Below, in pieces: positions 4,449 to 63,903 of a DNA stretch of 64,000 bases. Every line of letters begins with the position of its first letter. The stretch's first letter is position 1. The DNA is taken from IMG/VR virus record IMGVR_UViG_3300026521_000003, positions 1-64,000 of that record; one strand, 5' to 3'. The notes below the pieces were generated by a model. It was not told the DNA's origin. It worked only from the letters and a program-made list of their open reading frames with translations, and ran no database searches. Made by a program: the position numbers and the translations under genes.

Positions 4449-5252
4449 ATGAGCAAATTAGAAGAATTGATTAATGAATTAACAGATGACGAACTTGAAT
4501 ATTTACAAGAAACCGTATTTACTGATGATGGCACAATTATATCAAAAAAAGAGTTTGAGAAGATATTGCATTATGAAACAACTATGGAATCACAACAGGA
4601 TGCAGTACAATTTGCTCTTAAAATCAATCTTAATAGTGTATATGGTGTTCAAATTATGCCACATTTTAAATTTGCTGATGAATGGCAAGCATTAGGCGCT
4701 TCAACTACTTTAACAGGAAGAATTTTATCAAAATATGGCCTTATTGAAACCATAGAGCAATTTTTTAATCCTGAAAGAGAAAGTAGATTTGAATTCCCAT
4801 TACTTGATAATATTATTGTTGCTGCAGATGATGATGAGTTCTTTGAAAATCCAGAATCACAAAAATTAAGAAGTGCAGTAATTTCCGATACTGATAGTGT
4901 AACAAAAGATGCAACTATCGAAACGGATTTATTCGGTGTTATTACATTTGGTGAATTAGAGTTAAAAGCATCACATGTTAAAACTGAAAATAATAAAGAG
5001 TATTTTTATTTTGATTCTCCTTTACAAGTAACGAATTACATAGATAATAAAGTAGTATTCGATGAAGTTCAATATCTATATGCACATAGAGTTGAGAAAG
5101 AAATTTTTGAAATAGAATTAGAGGATGGTAGTTCAATCAAGGTGACTGAAGACCACTCTATAATGATTTTGGATAAAAATGGAGAACCAACTATTAAAAA
5201 GAAACCATCAGAATTATCAGTAGATGATGTATGTATGGTTTATACTAAATAA
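4449..5252 (+). CDS. polB: Family B DNA polymerase (gp43-like) internal fragment fused to split-intein N-half
   Basis: Motif B KINLNSVYG and TLTGR, then motif C cut at SDTD, followed by intein-like SVTKDATIET...IKVTEDHSIM (block B TxxH). Confidence 0.92.
   Translation: MSKLEELINELTDDELEYLQETVFTDDGTIISKKEFEKILHYETTMESQQDAVQFALKINLNSVYGVQIMPHFKFADEWQALGASTTLTGRILSKYGLIETIEQFFNPERESRFEFPLLDNIIVAADDDEFFENPESQKLRSAVISDTDSVTKDATIETDLFGVITFGELELKASHVKTENNKEYFYFDSPLQVTNYIDNKVVFDEVQYLYAHRVEKEIFEIELEDGSSIKVTEDHSIMILDKNGEPTIKKKPSELSVDDVCMVYTK
4896..5249 (+). other. Split intein N-fragment (118 aa, Ser1)
   Basis: Begins with Ser right after DTD. Block B TEDH present. The ORF ends with no block F/G. Confidence 0.9.
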
Positions 5253-25478: not shown

Positions 25479-25601
25479 ATGACACTATCTCACAAAAAAA
25501 TAAAATCTATTAAAAAAGTTAAATATTATGACAAAGTATATGATATAACTATGAAGTCCAACCCACATACATTTTTTGCTAATAATATTTTAGTACATAA
25601 C
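25479..25601 (+). other. Split intein C-fragment (41 aa, basic), Ser+1 at 25602
   Basis: Block F VYDI and block G LVHN followed by Ser. Confidence 0.92.
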
Positions 25602-26633
25602 AGTTGCTATTTTAGAATAATGGAGGCAGAAAATTTGGAGGAAGCTCAAAAAATTGGTGCCGATGTTGTAAAAGCATGTGATGAAGGTAGTATTCCAATG
25701 TTGGTTAAAGATATTTTTAATGGTGATGATGTCATGAGATCCGATTTTGAAGCTATTGCCCGTTCAACATTATCATATGGTAAAAAGAAACAATATGCAT
25801 TTCTAAAAGGTTGGGAAGATGGTGAAGTACTTCCAAAGCCAAAATTAGGTATTACCGGTCTATCTATTAAAAGATCTGATTCACCCAAACAACTATCTAT
25901 GGAAATGAAACCGTTCTTTACTGAAATTATGAAAGGTTTAAAACATGAGCAAATCAAAGAAGCTATGGATAAAATTGAGTCGGATTATGATGATCTAAGC
26001 TTATATGATTTATCTGCAAAACGTTCAGCGAATAATTTAGGTAAATATTTAAAAGCATTCAATTATGAAATTGAATATAAATCTAGACCTTATAATATAG
26101 AAAAAATTGATGAATTTTTAAAAGAAGAGTACCCTGATATAAAAATTAAAATAAATGATAAAATATATTTTGATTTTATGAGAGAAGGTAGAGGTCGTTA
26201 TTCATTAGAAGATGGTGAATTAATAAAAGATGTTAATGGCGAAATTTATATTGAAGCAAAGGTAAAAATGGTTGTACCATTTCATATAAAGGCGTCTATT
26301 TTATATAACTATCTATTAGATGAATATAATTTATCATCCGAGTTTAATCAAATATTAAACGGTGAAAAAATTAAACTTTTTTATATTAAACCTACAAAAA
26401 TAAATATAAAATATACAAATAGTGATGGTGAAGTATTTGATATGATACAAGAATTTGATTGTATTGCATTCCCTTCTAGTTCTAAACACATACCATCATT
26501 TATTAATGATTTTACCCCAGATAAAAAGAGAATGCTAGAAACTTATTTCTTTGGTAAAATGGAAACTATTTTTGATGTTATTGGATTTAGCAAAGAAAAA
26601 CTTGAAAATATAGCTATGGATTCACTATTCTAA
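25479..26633 (+). CDS. polB: Split-intein C-half fused to family B DNA polymerase C-terminal part (palm/thumb)
   Basis: VYDITM...TFFANNILVHN|SCYF, then KKKQYA, GLSIKRSDSP, PFHIKASILYN, GEKIK. Confidence 0.92.
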   Translation: MTLSHKKIKSIKKVKYYDKVYDITMKSNPHTFFANNILVHNSCYFRIMEAENLEEAQKIGADVVKACDEGSIPMLVKDIFNGDDVMRSDFEAIARSTLSYGKKKQYAFLKGWEDGEVLPKPKLGITGLSIKRSDSPKQLSMEMKPFFTEIMKGLKHEQIKEAMDKIESDYDDLSLYDLSAKRSANNLGKYLKAFNYEIEYKSRPYNIEKIDEFLKEEYPDIKIKINDKIYFDFMREGRGRYSLEDGELIKDVNGEIYIEAKVKMVVPFHIKASILYNYLLDEYNLSSEFNQILNGEKIKLFYIKPTKINIKYTNSDGEVFDMIQEFDCIAFPSSSKHIPSFINDFTPDKKRMLETYFFGKMETIFDVIGFSKEKLENIAMDSLF

Positions 26634-57515: not shown

Positions 57516-59237
57516 TTAATATTTTTTTAAAATACGTCTTCCACTATCCGTATAAATTAAAAACCCATTCATTATCATATTTTCTTTAATTGTTAAATTT
57601 TCATCATACAAATCTATATATCCCATTATATTAGTATGATCTAAAGTATTATGGGAAATAAATATTTTTTCTTTATTATAATATAATGATTCTGATATTG
57701 ATCCTTCAAAACTAAAGTCAATCTTAAAAAATAAATCCAAATATAAATTAAATCTTCGGTCAATTGATATTATTATAGGCTTATCGGTCGATATTAAAAT
57801 ATCTATAAATGGATTAGTGTTAAAATTTATTTCTGGACATATTATAAAATGTTTAATTTCTATATTATTTTTATGATTAGAAATACCCATTACAGCTAAG
57901 AGTTCACCATTAAAAAATGCACCATACATTTTTATAAATGATAGGTTGATATTATACATATGTTTATTTAAAAAATCAAAACCTATGGAAGTATCAATTA
58001 TTTTGACTTCAAGCTCATTAATATCTAGGGTTTTTATTTTATATTTTAATTTATGGAGTATAATCTGTTTACAATAATCTTCATGATATTCCCATTCATA
58101 TTCATAAAATTGTATCAATGTTATATCTAAATTATCAGCGATTAGACTACTATCAATATAAGATGTATCCCTCGAAGTTGATGGTGACAAAATCTCTATA
58201 AATATATTTGATTTTAAGATTTCTATTTTATCCATATCTACTATCTTAAAGATATACCCTATTGAACTTAAAAAATCTTGGATTTTATTTAAAATATGTT
58301 TTCTATTATTTAATCTAGGATTACATTGAAAACAAACGGGTAAATTATTACTATCAATTAGACTTGTAATTATATTATTACATCTCTTACATTTAAATTT
58401 ATATTTATATTTGTTATCATATACCTGCAAATCATCAATACAAGTAACAAAAATATTATCTTTAAATTTTTCAAAAATTTTATTATTAAGGGTACTATCA
58501 ATTTTTGATAAGGATATAGGATTTTTTTGAGCAGAATAACTATCATATTTTGAAATAATTGTATTTTTACGTTTTTCTAAAATAGATTTATTCTTTATAG
58601 GAAATATAGTTCCGAATTTTTTTAAGTTTGTATTATATGCTTTTTTTCTAATATAATCTAATGATAAAGGGTGTTTAACACCATATTTAATCAAATTGGT
58701 AGTTATCGTTTTATTTCTAATTTCTTGAGATTGTTGTGCATATTCCACCCCATATTTCTCAATCATTGTCTTTTTTATTTTTTCTTTTGTACTATCTAAT
58801 TTTGCAATAGAATCAACACCATATTTTTCTTTAACCGTCTTTTTTATTTTTTCTTTTGTACTATCTAATTTTGCAATAGAATCAACACCATATTTTTCTT
58901 TAACCGTCTTTTTTAATTTCTTTTTTTGTTTTTCATTTTGTAAAGGGTGTTCTGTTCCATAATTTTTAAGAAATGTTATTTTTTGATTATGTTCTTTTGA
59001 ACATCCTAAATTAAATATATTAGTACGTTCATTAAATGAAGCATAATTTGAACAATTTTTAAATTGACATTTTGGAGGAGTATCTAGATCCCTTATCAAT
59101 AAATACCATTGGGCTTTTATAGATAAAGTTGGGTATCTCTCATTAAGATACCCAATAAGTTCTTTTGAAAAGTTTTTAAAATAAATATTTTTTTTAGTTT
59201 TATAATATTCAATTTCTTCTTTTAATTTAGTTTCCAT
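57516..59237 (-). CDS. Hef-like putative homing endonuclease with KYG repeats
   Basis: KKT..EKYGV repeats, CKRC...CFQC, C-terminal FL.K...YGAF...LLAVM...IDRRF...G.F...Y..G, typical of the Hef-like family in Campylobacter phages. Confidence 0.6.
   Translation of the reverse strand: METKLKEEIEYYKTKKNIYFKNFSKELIGYLNERYPTLSIKAQWYLLIRDLDTPPKCQFKNCSNYASFNERTNIFNLGCSKEHNQKITFLKNYGTEHPLQNEKQKKKLKKTVKEKYGVDSIAKLDSTKEKIKKTVKEKYGVDSIAKLDSTKEKIKKTMIEKYGVEYAQQSQEIRNKTITTNLIKYGVKHPLSLDYIRKKAYNTNLKKFGTIFPIKNKSILEKRKNTIISKYDSYSAQKNPISLSKIDSTLNNKIFEKFKDNIFVTCIDDLQVYDNKYKYKFKCKRCNNIITSLIDSNNLPVCFQCNPRLNNRKHILNKIQDFLSSIGYIFKIVDMDKIEILKSNIFIEILSPSTSRDTSYIDSSLIADNLDITLIQFYEYEWEYHEDYCKQIILHKLKYKIKTLDINELEVKIIDTSIGFDFLNKHMYNINLSFIKMYGAFFNGELLAVMGISNHKNNIEIKHFIICPEINFNTNPFIDILISTDKPIIISIDRRFNLYLDLFFKIDFSFEGSISESLYYNKEKIFISHNTLDHTNIMGYIDLYDENLTIKENMIMNGFLIYTDSGRRILKKY
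58768..58915. repeat. Perfect 69-bp tandem repeat (about 2.1 copies; 23 aa)
   Basis: KKTVKEKYGVDSIAKLDSTKEKI twice, identical at DNA level. Confidence 0.9.
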
Positions 59238-59243
59238 AACATA

Positions 59244-60476
59244 TTATTTTGTAGCTAGCCATTCTTTTCTAATTGATGCATTATCATCAAAAAATATTTG
59301 CATTAATTCATCTAAATGTCCTTGATCAGTAATATTAAAGGCATATTCATCCAAATTTGAAAATACATATTCCCAATCCGGCTTTTGCATAGATCCTAAT
59401 CCTTTAAAGTAATCAATTTTCCACGAATCATCAACCGCACCAGATTCTTTAGCTTCATCAAATTCATGTCTATTTGAATAATATAATACTTTTTTACCTT
59501 TTTTTGCAGCAATCATAGGAAATACAATTCTATTAATAAATGGGTTTTCATGATCCCAAAATAGTTCTGGGAAATATTCATGGAATAAATTAACAACAAG
59601 ATTATTAATAGCACTTCCATCTGGATCAGCATCAGTTGCTATATAAATTTTTGAATATTTCAATTTCGTATCAAAAGCAGGACGTAACCATTTATGAAAT
59701 CTAACTAATTTAGCAGTAGAATCAGCTTTTTTAATCTCTATACTTTGTGTTGTTTTTGGCATTTTTTTAAGTAACATAGACACTTTATGCCATTTTTTAT
59801 CAATATATACTTCATCGATGTCATTGCAAATTAATGTCGTTCTACCTATTTTAACTTCGTATTTAACACCATTTTTTCTAAATCCTCTAAATTCCCATTT
59901 TCTTCTAAAATGAAAATAATCTGGGGCTGAAAGATCAGAAATTGTAGCGTCACTTGTTTCTATTTTTTGAATATATCCACGATATAGTGTTTCATTATTT
60001 ACCAACTCACCAATACTAACCCATTTTTTATTTAAGTGGAATTTATCTTCTGAGCTAACAATTACTGTTTTGATTATAGGTTCACCTTCTTTATCAACTT
60101 CAAAAATACTTTCAAAAGTTACCTCATATATATTCACATTATCACTAATCACCCAATCACCCATTTGTTCATTAAACTCAAGATTTATTGCTGTAATTAT
60201 ATCAGCTACTTCATCATTATTCATTGCATCTATTGGTGCTTTACCATAAACATTTAAAACTTTACCTTTTAATGGCATCCCTGCTTGTGTCTCTGGATCC
60301 CTAATCTCAGTAAATGAAGCTATTGCAGAATTATGTGTTAATAATCCATTTTCAAGAATAAATGTTTCATTATCTTCTACTTGTATATCATTCATATTAA
60401 TGACTTTATTAGTACTATAAACACTATTAATTTCTACCATATCAAATTCATCAATATTTATTTCATTCAATTGCAT
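59244..60476 (-). CDS. Split-intein C-half fused to type II topoisomerase TOPRIM fragment (gp39/gp60, GyrB C-terminal-like)
   Basis: NDIQVEDNETFILENGLLTHN|SAIA (the SA of EGDSA), PLKGKVLNV, IATDADPDG, YFKGLGS. Confidence 0.9.
   Translation of the reverse strand: MQLNEINIDEFDMVEINSVYSTNKVINMNDIQVEDNETFILENGLLTHNSAIASFTEIRDPETQAGMPLKGKVLNVYGKAPIDAMNNDEVADIITAINLEFNEQMGDWVISDNVNIYEVTFESIFEVDKEGEPIIKTVIVSSEDKFHLNKKWVSIGELVNNETLYRGYIQKIETSDATISDLSAPDYFHFRRKWEFRGFRKNGVKYEVKIGRTTLICNDIDEVYIDKKWHKVSMLLKKMPKTTQSIEIKKADSTAKLVRFHKWLRPAFDTKLKYSKIYIATDADPDGSAINNLVVNLFHEYFPELFWDHENPFINRIVFPMIAAKKGKKVLYYSNRHEFDEAKESGAVDDSWKIDYFKGLGSMQKPDWEYVFSNLDEYAFNITDQGHLDELMQIFFDDNASIRKEWLATK
60330..60476 (-). other. 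Split intein C-fragment (49 aa, acidic), Ser+1 at 60329-60327
   Basis: Block F DIQV...TF and block G LTHN followed by Ser. Confidence 0.88.
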
Positions 60477-60545: not shown

Positions 60546-61094
60546 CTAATTAATTTCTCTAGTAGAATGTATTTTTATTAATTCATCAGGATATTCTTCT
60601 TTGAAGATATTATAAAGTGATTCGAATTTTTTATAATTTGAATCATATATCAATGTAAATTCTTTAGAATTATAATTTATAGATTTATGAGTAGTAAATA
60701 CCAATCTAATAAAATCTAATAATACTTTGTTAATATCATTATTTACAATTTTATTAGTATCAGATAAAATGATGATTTCTTTATTTCGATCTTCATAAAC
60801 AATTAATTCAATATCATATCCTATTTCTAAAGTCAAATTCAATATATATTTTCTAATAATATTAGTGATACCTAAATTGTTAGTTAATACTTTATCAGAA
60901 TTCATTATACTGTCTGGCATTAGTGTATAATGTGTAATTGTAGTTTTTATAGGTTCTATGATAGTTTCAATTTTATATTGGTTCTCAAACCAATCAAATG
61001 ACGGTATAAGAGAAGCGTAGTAAACGTCTTGACCTATACCAAAATAATGTTTTAAGACACCAATAGATTTAAGGTTCTTATTACTGTACATCAC
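60546..61094 (-). CDS. Hypothetical protein
   Basis: Open ORF. Confidence 0.55.
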   Translation of the reverse strand: MMYSNKNLKSIGVLKHYFGIGQDVYYASLIPSFDWFENQYKIETIIEPIKTTITHYTLMPDSIMNSDKVLTNNLGITNIIRKYILNLTLEIGYDIELIVYEDRNKEIIILSDTNKIVNNDINKVLLDFIRLVFTTHKSINYNSKEFTLIYDSNYKKFESLYNIFKEEYPDELIKIHSTREIN

Positions 61095-61716
61095 TTAAAC
61101 TAGTAATTACCTTATCAATAAAGCCTTCTTCCGCTGCTTCTTCTGGAGATAACCACCAATCTCTATCAGTTTTCTTTTTCATCTCTTCAAAAGAAGTTTT
61201 GCCACCTGTAAATTCTGATAAATATCTATTTAATTTTTCATAAAGTTTTCTCGTTTCTTCAACACTTCTTTCCATATCAACGTACTGCGTACCACCTTGA
61301 ATACCACTCATTACCTGATGATACATTAATCTACTATTTGGAAGTGAATAACGTTTACCTTGTGCTCCTCCAGATACTAAAAATGACCCCATAGATGCAG
61401 CACTACCAATACAAATAGTAACAACATCATTAGGTATTAAATTCATAGTATCCAAAACAGCCAAACCATCAGAAACACTTCCACCCGGAGAATTAATATA
61501 AAAGTAAATATCTGCTTCTGGATCTTCAGAAGATAATACTAACAATTGCATAATAATCGACATAGCTGACTGATTATTTACATCACTATTCAACATAACA
61601 ATTCGGTCTTTTAAAAGTCTTGATGGTAAATCAAAACTACGTTCTCTATCTCCATCATTCTCAATTACAATGGGAGCGTATGCTGCTTTTGGTTTTAAAT
61701 TTTGTTCTAAATTCAT
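61081..61716 (-). CDS. clpP: ATP-dependent Clp protease proteolytic subunit (bacterial type)
   Basis: ERSFDLPSRLLKDRI, YINSPGGS, AASMGS, MYHQ, DRDWWL; triad intact. Confidence 0.93.
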   Translation of the reverse strand: MNLEQNLKPKAAYAPIVIENDGDRERSFDLPSRLLKDRIVMLNSDVNNQSAMSIIMQLLVLSSEDPEADIYFYINSPGGSVSDGLAVLDTMNLIPNDVVTICIGSAASMGSFLVSGGAQGKRYSLPNSRLMYHQVMSGIQGGTQYVDMERSVEETRKLYEKLNRYLSEFTGGKTSFEEMKKKTDRDWWLSPEEAAEEGFIDKVITSLSDVQ

Positions 61717-62190: not shown

Positions 62191-62522
62191 GAAAAAATCA
62201 CTTTACCAGTTATACTTTTATTACTGATATTATTAATATTTCTCCATCGTTTGAGTTTTTCAAATTCATTAGGTATAACATTAACAATAGTTTCCATAAC
62301 CCTTGTCGATGTACCAAACATAGCTTTCTCCTTTTTTGGATTCGCTCTAGGTATTTTTGACATATTGAGATCATTTAATCCTATTTTTTGTCGCATTAAA
62401 TCATATGATCTAACAGATTCAAAATAATTAAGGATTGACTGCGCATATAATAATTCTTTCTTTAAATATTTAATCCTTTGCTGATACCATATCCATTGTT
62501 TTATTCTTTTAATATCAACCAT
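62187..62522 (-). CDS. Hypothetical protein
   Basis: ORF in an operon. Confidence 0.5.
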   Translation of the reverse strand: MVDIKRIKQWIWYQQRIKYLKKELLYAQSILNYFESVRSYDLMRQKIGLNDLNMSKIPRANPKKEKAMFGTSTRVMETIVNVIPNEFEKLKRWRNINNISNKSITGKVIFS

Positions 62523-62794
62523 TTTTTAAACCCACCCCTTTTTTTAAGCTTATTAATCCTTGCAGACTCTATTTCATCTCTATAAATACCTTGAAATTCA
62601 GCCATAGCATATATAATCTCAATAACATCAGCATACTCTTCAATATCATTAAAAGCTGTTTCGGAAAGCTCTTCTAATTCTTCATATATTTTATCTTTCA
62701 AAAAAATAAATTTTTCTGAAATATCTTCAGCAATATATAGTCGATTAGTATCGATAATAGATTCGTATTTATCTCTAATTAATTTACTCATCAT
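62501..62794 (-). CDS. MazG-like nucleoside triphosphate pyrophosphohydrolase
   Basis: KLIRDK...KIYEELEE...EEYADVIEII...R..K..KRGGF. Confidence 0.8.
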   Translation of the reverse strand: MMSKLIRDKYESIIDTNRLYIAEDISEKFIFLKDKIYEELEELSETAFNDIEEYADVIEIIYAMAEFQGIYRDEIESARINKLKKRGGFKKWLILKE

Positions 62795-63238: not shown

Positions 63239-63247
63239 ACTATAACC

Positions 63248-63478
63248 CTATTCTTGAATTAATAGATGATCAATTTGTATTTTTAAATCTTCCATCTTTT
63301 TCATAGTTAATTCTTTAGTTTTAGAATCCCATACACCCCATAAATGCGACGGTGATGATTTGACTATCCGATCTGATGTTTTAAATACATACTTATAAAC
63401 TCTTTCTTCTGGTTTAAATTCAATATCTAATATTGGTAGGGTCTTAAAGATTCTACCATCATCTAATTTAGTAATCAT
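63248..63478 (-). CDS. Free-standing HINT/intein-like fragment
   Basis: VYKYVFKTSDRIVKSSPSHLWGV...KKMEDLKI..D resembles intein block B and the following strands; no block A or G. Confidence 0.5.
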   Translation of the reverse strand: MITKLDDGRIFKTLPILDIEFKPEERVYKYVFKTSDRIVKSSPSHLWGVWDSKTKELTMKKMEDLKIQIDHLLIQE

Positions 63479-63903
63479 AATACACTTTCAATGAATGAAG
63501 GACAATCAATACTTATTTTTTTATATAAATCATCGTGTATATTTAAAATATCATTCATTTTCTTAATAATGTCATCCGACACATATAAAAAATATTTTTC
63601 AGCATCATCACGAGTTTTAAAAAATTTAATACCTTTTGAATTTGCTTCCCATCTAGATAATTTAGTTCCATCTTTCATTATAAGTGTTAAACGTGTTATA
63701 GAATCATCACCATGCCAATATCTTCGATCGCCTATTTCGATAGAAACTTCTTGAGGTTCAATATAATCAACATCCACATGTTGTTTTTCATCACCTGCAT
63801 ATTTCTCGATTCTTATCCCAGAAACCCAAAACCGCTTATTCTCTTTTTTCATAGCTGAACGCAAAACAGTTTTTGGAGAAACTTGTGTGATTACTCTTGA
63901 CAT
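63475..63903 (-). CDS. Hypothetical protein
   Basis: ORF in an operon. Confidence 0.55.
   Translation of the reverse strand: MSRVITQVSPKTVLRSAMKKENKRFWVSGIRIEKYAGDEKQHVDVDYIEPQEVSIEIGDRRYWHGDDSITRLTLIMKDGTKLSRWEANSKGIKFFKTRDDAEKYFLYVSDDIIKKMNDILNIHDDLYKKISIDCPSFIESVL

Follow-up and report, generated by a model that had tools for sequence, protein, structure and literature searches.

The window analysed here comprises 64 kb from the start of a virus record of 289,880 bp in IMG/VR (hereafter, G000), which has a GC content of 27% and an estimated completeness of about 87% (CheckV). The replication genes of G000 are distant kin of those of PA5oct-like and Atu_ph07-like jumbo phages, and DNA nearly identical to it is present in metagenomes from hydrothermal vents, epibionts and biofilms. 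Towards the end of the window, on the minus strand, lies a gene for a protein of 76 amino acids, which begins with M-I-T-K and ends with L-L-I-Q-E directly before the stop codon. It is followed on the same strand by four small ORFs, a ClpP protease gene, a 182 amino acid ORF, the gene for the C-terminal part of the topoisomerase II large subunit (TopoII-C) and a DUF7487-type gene (Table 1). The start of TopoII-C with its C-intein is 2.8 kb downstream of the 76-aa gene, where the initial annotation of this DNA had placed it. One of the small ORFs, of 97 amino acids, gives weak matches to MazG-like, dUTPase_2 and PRA-PH families (E 0.02–0.05), which suggests a small all-alpha NTP pyrophosphohydrolase.

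Table 1. Coordinates of the features discussed. Positions up to 64,000 lie in the window; those beyond refer to G000.
Feature	Positions	Strand	Remarks
76-aa fragment gene (M-intein-like, free-standing HINT middle piece)	63248-63478	-	ATG start
Block B (TxxH-type) codons, S42-P43-S44-H45 of the fragment	63344-63355	-	aligned to S-x-N-H of the topoisomerase N-intein
142-aa gene	63475-63903	-	upstream of the fragment gene; stop overlaps fragment start (ATGA)
97-aa ORF	62501-62794	-	between the fragment gene and ClpP
ClpP protease gene, phage	61081-61716	-	always downstream of the fragment gene
TopoII-C gene	59244-60476	-	
Topoisomerase II C-intein, 49 aa	60330-60476	-	start of TopoII-C; blocks F/G, ending T-H-N/S
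C-extein, topoisomerase II large-subunit C-terminal part (TOPRIM / TOPRIM_C)	59244-60329	-	
Homing endonuclease gene, DUF7487-type	57516-59237	-	directly downstream of TopoII-C
TopoII-N gene	176790-178421		ends with the N-intein
Topoisomerase II N-intein, 95 aa	178134-178418		block A C-I-D-S-N-T; block B S-K-N-H
Catalytic TOPRIM motif E-G-D/S-A, interrupted by the topoisomerase intein	60327-60340; 178125-178136		
PolB halves	4449-5252; 25479-26633	+	split at D-T-D/S
PolB N-intein, 118 aa	4896-5249	+	block B T-E-D-H
PolB C-intein, 41 aa	25479-25601	+	
First TerL piece	275194-275802	+	ends with the TerL-a N-intein (33 aa, block A only)
Homing-endonuclease-like gene, 711 aa	275838-277973	+	after the first TerL piece
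Second TerL piece	279385-280170	+	starts with the TerL-a C-intein (112 aa, block B S-E-T-H); ends with the TerL-b N-intein (41 aa, block A only)
Third TerL piece (TerL-C)	196327-197640	-	starts with the TerL-b C-intein (114 aa, block B S-K-N-H)
DnaB-like helicase C-fragment	225495-226100	+	37-aa C-intein
L-P-[ED]-[ED]-V family ORFs (examples)	251481-252266, 252278-253078, 253113-254072, 254719-255171, 255183-256667, 271115-272446		

Of the sequence blocks that define an intein, the 76-aa protein keeps block B, of the TxxH type, as S42-x-x-H45. Block A is missing, and with it a Cys1 or any other nucleophile (Cys, Ser or Thr) at position 1 behind an N-extein. Also missing are blocks F and G with the terminal Asn (the HN end) and a C-extein nucleophile, as a complete mini-intein would have. 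The open frame amounts to just 79 codons, only three of them upstream of the start, so that a block A cannot hide in frame upstream of the fragment. The initial annotation had singled out this ORF for a block-B-like pattern and for the absence of a first Cys or Ser, an HN end and an extein. The absences are plain from the sequence, and the pattern falls in the region picked out by Pfam and NCBIfam matches, by a family HMM, by hhalign and by AF2-based matches.

The gene is real, conserved and under strong purifying selection. An exhaustive phmmer search with the 76-aa protein returned seven small homologues and one spurious hit, P0007 (1414 aa), which was rejected as a WD40 repeat protein matching an H-x-W-x-V-W-D stretch. 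A profile-seeded word search enlarged the family to at least 58 members, which come from AT-rich jumbo phages, on contigs of up to 347 kb. All 58 are 76–87 amino acids long, begin at the same Met in the family alignment and are fused to no other domain. Residues Y28, H45 and W47 are invariant in the 58 sequences and about 20 more positions are kept in at least 90%, a level of conservation also seen for Ser42. For unsaturated pairs the dN/dS ratio is 0.06, at dS 0.37 as well as at dS 0.75. A tblastn search of cultured phages with the 76-aa protein found nothing. Contigs from a metatranscriptome library span positions 63240–63449 at 100% identity, with the highest depth within a 3.6-kb stretch; as a sign of transcription this is weak, since carry-over of DNA is not excluded.

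The 76-aa sequence itself, used as a query, gave no matches in Pfam or PHROG. Two diverged family members match Pfam Intein_splicing (PF14890) over positions 38–91 of 155 (E = 0.0025), and one member matches TIGR01445 (E = 0.013). The best family member scores 18 bits against a curated PF14890 cut-off of 35.8 bits; the genuine topoisomerase N-intein of G000 also falls below the cut-offs, and its match to Pfam Hint (E = 0.028) is no better than those of the family. An AF2 model from the single sequence was poor (pLDDT 53), and one calculated with the alignment of 58 sequences has a pLDDT of 96.9 and eight beta strands. The latter was compared with 48,161 chains using VIA-align, and the top match was the Npu intein (Z 5.6, rmsd 2.5 for 59 residues). 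HINT domains make up about 14 of the 50 top matches, with modest Z-scores of 4–5.6, and small beta folds other than inteins (AXH and S4e) score similarly. Residues 1–76 of the model align to residues 36–98 of the Npu DnaE N-intein, 28–88 of gp41-1 and 44–108 of NrdJ-1.

In the ESM Atlas, the nearest clusters by features are small viral proteins carrying PF14890, and the best structural neighbour is a 580-aa viral GyrB/TopoII-N cluster with a C-terminal N-intein (TM 0.77 for the Atlas model; 0.72 for the AF2 model, over 66 residues at 2.2 Å). The next structural neighbours are an 89-aa 'intein splicing domain' cluster, Pol III alpha fragments and PT-HINT. Foldseek searches of the PDB and BFVD gave no significant match (E-values at or above 0.5), and no intein came up when PDB sequences were searched with profiles. 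Whatever the TM or Z, the whole HINT horseshoe cannot show in a part of 76 residues. With modest VIA Z-scores and Foldseek matches that are not significant, structure alone is insufficient, and it is the sequence profiles that settle the HINT identity. Of the HINT profile and structure searches proposed in the initial annotation, profiles, VIA-align and the ESM Atlas point to inteins; the profile matches stay below cut-off and Foldseek is not significant. The observation of an intein-like middle fragment is confirmed, and its reading as a free-standing HINT piece with block B is supported.

The closest relative of the fragment in G000 is the N-intein of the phage topoisomerase. When the family HMM was run against the 816 ORFs of G000, the sole match other than the fragment itself was TopoII-N (E = 1.5e-4). 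Fragment positions 29–74 align with N-intein positions 46–91 at an identity of about 18–20%, and both sequences combine an aromatic residue ahead of block B with the S-x-x-H motif and a terminal H-x-L-L strand. By hhalign, the family matches four topoisomerase N-inteins (from G000 and P0061–P0063) over residues 30–74 against 47–91, with P = 4.2e-6 and a probability of 87%; a reversed control gave P = 0.35. For a single topoisomerase N-intein sequence the P value is 2e-5, and for ten further intein pieces, taken from G000 and from the related phage G002 (PolB, RNR, TerL and others), it is at least 0.018. By these alignments, the 76-aa protein is specifically a paralogue, in truncated form, of the N-intein on the phage's topoisomerase II. 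The two share block B and the strands that follow it up to H-x-L-L, and they occur in the same genomes. By comparison with the N-intein, the fragment lacks the first approximately 20 residues (Cys1, block A and N2) and the TopoII-N extein, and it has invariant residues of its own.

The boundaries of the fragment are those expected of a middle piece (M-intein). In the fragment, the His of block B stands at position 45; it stands at 49 in both long TerL C-inteins and at 62 in the 95-aa topoisomerase N-intein. It is followed by 31 residues in the fragment versus 33 in the topoisomerase N-intein. From these distances, the fragment starts at the N-terminal split site, the one used by natural 'atypical' split inteins, and stops at the canonical one.

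The order of small gene, ClpP and TopoII-C is kept in relatives down to 29–47% identity, and a C-intein is present at the start of TopoII-C in all eight relatives examined. The gene is linked to ClpP as tightly as to TopoII-C, and in the most diverged relatives ClpP adjoins it directly. All genomes in this comparison belong to one phage clade, so the co-occurrence of fragment and C-intein is not independent evidence; relatives sought by way of ClpP were of the same clade, apart from one unrelated GC-rich phage without the fragment gene. The upstream gene (142–150 aa) is the usual neighbour and is absent in two relatives. We considered whether the 142-aa ORF might be an N-extein with a very short N-intein (C-P-S-F...), and rejected this because its C-terminal Cys is not conserved.

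G000 holds four inteins that can be assembled from their parts, in PolB, in topoisomerase II and twice in TerL (Table 1). The topoisomerase intein interrupts the catalytic TOPRIM motif, and TopoII-N is encoded 117 kb from TopoII-C and its C-intein. About 1,400 tblastn matches of the C-intein region in cultured phages were dismissed as spurious, as blocks F and G mimic the E-G-D-S-A of TOPRIM; the topoisomerases behind them are T4-like and intein-free. The two halves of the family B DNA polymerase are 20 kb apart, and its split intein is cysteine-less, with Ser1, block B T-E-D-H and the end V-H-N/S. Its blocks match those of the split intein of Pseudomonas phage MIJ3 (PMC6892783). Two atypical split inteins join the three pieces of TerL; a homing-endonuclease-like gene follows the first piece, and the third is encoded about 80 kb off on the opposite strand.

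A further C-intein, of 37 residues, belongs to a DnaB-like helicase, and its insertion point immediately follows the place that the S-Q-L-N-R motif occupies in PA5oct DnaB. The N-terminal fragment of this helicase was found in neither G000 nor G002 (IMGVR_UViG_3300035665_000001, a related 306-kb phage) by searches with DnaB_C, phrog_239, Walker A motifs and HMMs of block A and N-inteins or by tblastn with PA5oct DnaB, and it presumably lies in unassembled sequence of the record. The ORF at G000 172173–172520 was considered as a second fragment (small N-intein HMM, E = 0.016) and dropped for want of Pfam support.

This inventory bears on the proposal that the fragment supplies block B in trans to a short N-intein and the topoisomerase C-intein. 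The proposal is not supported for the topoisomerase, whose 95-aa N-intein contains both block A and block B. As for a partner gene ending in a lone block-A tail, a block-A HMM run over G000 found the two TerL tails and no orphan beyond them, and both are paired with C-inteins that bear block B. Block B is thus present in each of the PolB, TopoII, TerL-a and TerL-b pairs, the circumstance that the initial annotation had itself named as telling against a third piece, and among these pairs there is no partnerless block-A-only N-extein beside a C-intein lacking block B. As all the inteins of G000 that assemble have a block B, the fragment is likelier to be a splicing modulator or a reused domain than a third part.

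The lone place left for a natural three-piece intein is the helicase. There the fragment would be the first natural M-intein, giving block B in trans, and the N-fragment would be encoded in the unassembled part of the genome. We regard this as improbable. In its favour, the fragment is the exact segment between two natural split sites, both used in G000 (the 33- and 41-aa TerL N-inteins mark the first), the family has the catalytic His of block B without exception and conserves the Ser, and the 37-aa helicase C-intein has no N-partner in G000 or G002; engineered N/M/C inteins do work. Set against it are the block B in four of four assemblable pairs, the absence of an orphan block-A-only tail from G000, and the specific resemblance of the fragment to the topoisomerase N-intein, itself complete. 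Moreover, the record is about 87% complete, and it is simpler to suppose that the helicase N-fragment is missing from it and ends in a long N-intein of the ordinary kind. A chance resemblance, without HINT kinship, in a small beta protein is very improbable: the failure of every match to reach Pfam or NCBIfam cut-offs, the PDB-sequence profile search without an intein, the Foldseek E-values of 0.5 or more and the VIA Z-scores below 6 would all agree with it, and yet independent lines of evidence all lead to one region of one fold, the reversed-sequence control fails, and true inteins of G000 score equally poorly in Pfam. Least credible of all is a decaying, functionless relic, left by an intein or a gene rearrangement; what suggests it is that a truncated N-intein paralogue lies not far from the C-half of the fractured topoisomerase gene. 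That reading, which the initial annotation had entertained, is contradicted by the dN/dS of 0.06 and by 58 intact, conserved homologues of constant length with many near-invariant positions. Synteny is kept down to about 30% identity, and dS values up to saturation argue against the homologues being one recent clone.

A role outside splicing deserves more weight, although it too appears rather unlikely. The AF2 model folds confidently on its own, and the 76-aa protein may therefore be a self-contained domain that serves another purpose, for example a domesticated HINT-derived beta-domain acting as a partner or adaptor of ClpP or of the 142-aa protein. The immediate vicinity of ClpP, which follows the gene directly in the relatives that have diverged most, is in keeping with this, as are the translational coupling to the upstream gene in most genomes, the compact and confidently predicted monomer, and the family-specific invariant residues Y28, W47, W50 and D36-R37, which are not classical intein residues. 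Against it, the block-B S..H and the C-terminal H-x-L-L strand are still as in the topoisomerase N-intein, the upstream gene is missing from two relatives, and Pfam, PHROG and NCBIfam-type searches gave no similarity to known Clp adaptors.

The reading that we favour, tentatively, is that of a splicing modulator, one of the alternatives in the initial annotation, in which the fragment is a non-splicing partner of the topoisomerase C-intein and a trans-acting regulator of TopoII trans-splicing. By fragment complementation, the 76-aa protein would dock on the 49-aa C-intein encoded in the same cluster, as the real N-intein would, and once docked it would be unable to start splicing. Until displaced by the complete TopoII-N with its N-intein, encoded far away, the docked fragment could keep the C-intein in place or shield it, set the timing of trans-splicing or restrict it, or promote C-terminal cleavage. 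A complex prediction for the fragment and residues 1–60 of TopoII-C gave a score of 0.29 (mark, 0.34) and speaks neither way. What fits the modulator model least is the invariant block-B His. This His and the conserved Ser are what one would expect of a catalytic role, and a pure decoy would have no obvious need of them, which keeps a catalytic reading alive.

From nature, inteins are known in one or two pieces, and three-piece inteins are known only as engineered tools. Such three-piece split inteins, with an M-intein from Ssp or Rma DnaB, Npu DnaE or gp41-1, are described in a 2023 preprint, according to which natural ones are unproven (bioRxiv 10.1101/2023.01.30.526203). Like an engineered M-intein, the fragment is a separate polypeptide that runs from behind block A to the canonical split site and contains block B without an extein or nucleophile. 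It differs in being natural, conserved and under selection, in that no pair of short N- and short C-inteins without block B was found for it, and in that its closest relative is complete. Natural atypical split inteins of the AceL-TerL type combine a very short N-intein with a long C-intein. The fragment starts where the long C-inteins of the two such TerL inteins in G000 start (block-B His at +45 versus +49), but whereas those run on through blocks F and G into the C-extein, it stops at the canonical split site. The setting is that of the split inteins in fractured genes, with broken phage replication and packaging genes and homing endonucleases beside them (Dassa et al. 2009; PMC2677866); those are systems of two pieces, of which a third, extein-less HINT fragment is not known to be part. 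A search of the literature found nothing on natural free-standing middle fragments of inteins.

In this phage lineage, strong selection maintains precisely the M segment of the phage's topoisomerase intein as a gene in its own right. Binding to the C-intein would make the fragment the first natural case of splicing controlled or chaperoned by a free intein fragment, and a ready-made orthogonal part for conditional splicing tools. Should it have another role, it would show that exaptation can turn half a HINT domain into a fold of its own. The phenomenon may exceed this one family, as further small viral clusters in the ESM Atlas (72, 83, 89 and 111 aa) with intein or HINT features resemble the model of the fragment. 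Free-standing intein fragments may accordingly be recurrent in phages, although the clusters listed could also be gene-calling fragments.

The related phage G002 has at least nine C-intein ends (for example in 106996–110468, 63460–66627 and 241522–244614) and an RNR in three pieces. Its other inteins include two contiguous ones in a 1055-aa ORF whose orthologue in G000 (100792–102273) has none, one that splits a P-loop protein inside the Walker A motif, and an additional one in TerL, located at the Walker A site. Compared with the content of G000, this indicates that intein load varies strongly within the clade. In addition, the regions of G000 at about 251–272 kb and 281–283 kb contain a family of paralogous ORFs with a near-identical C-terminal motif, L-P-[ED]-[ED]-V-[KR]-x-I-F-[IVL]-F (examples in Table 1), and the same family is also seen in G002.
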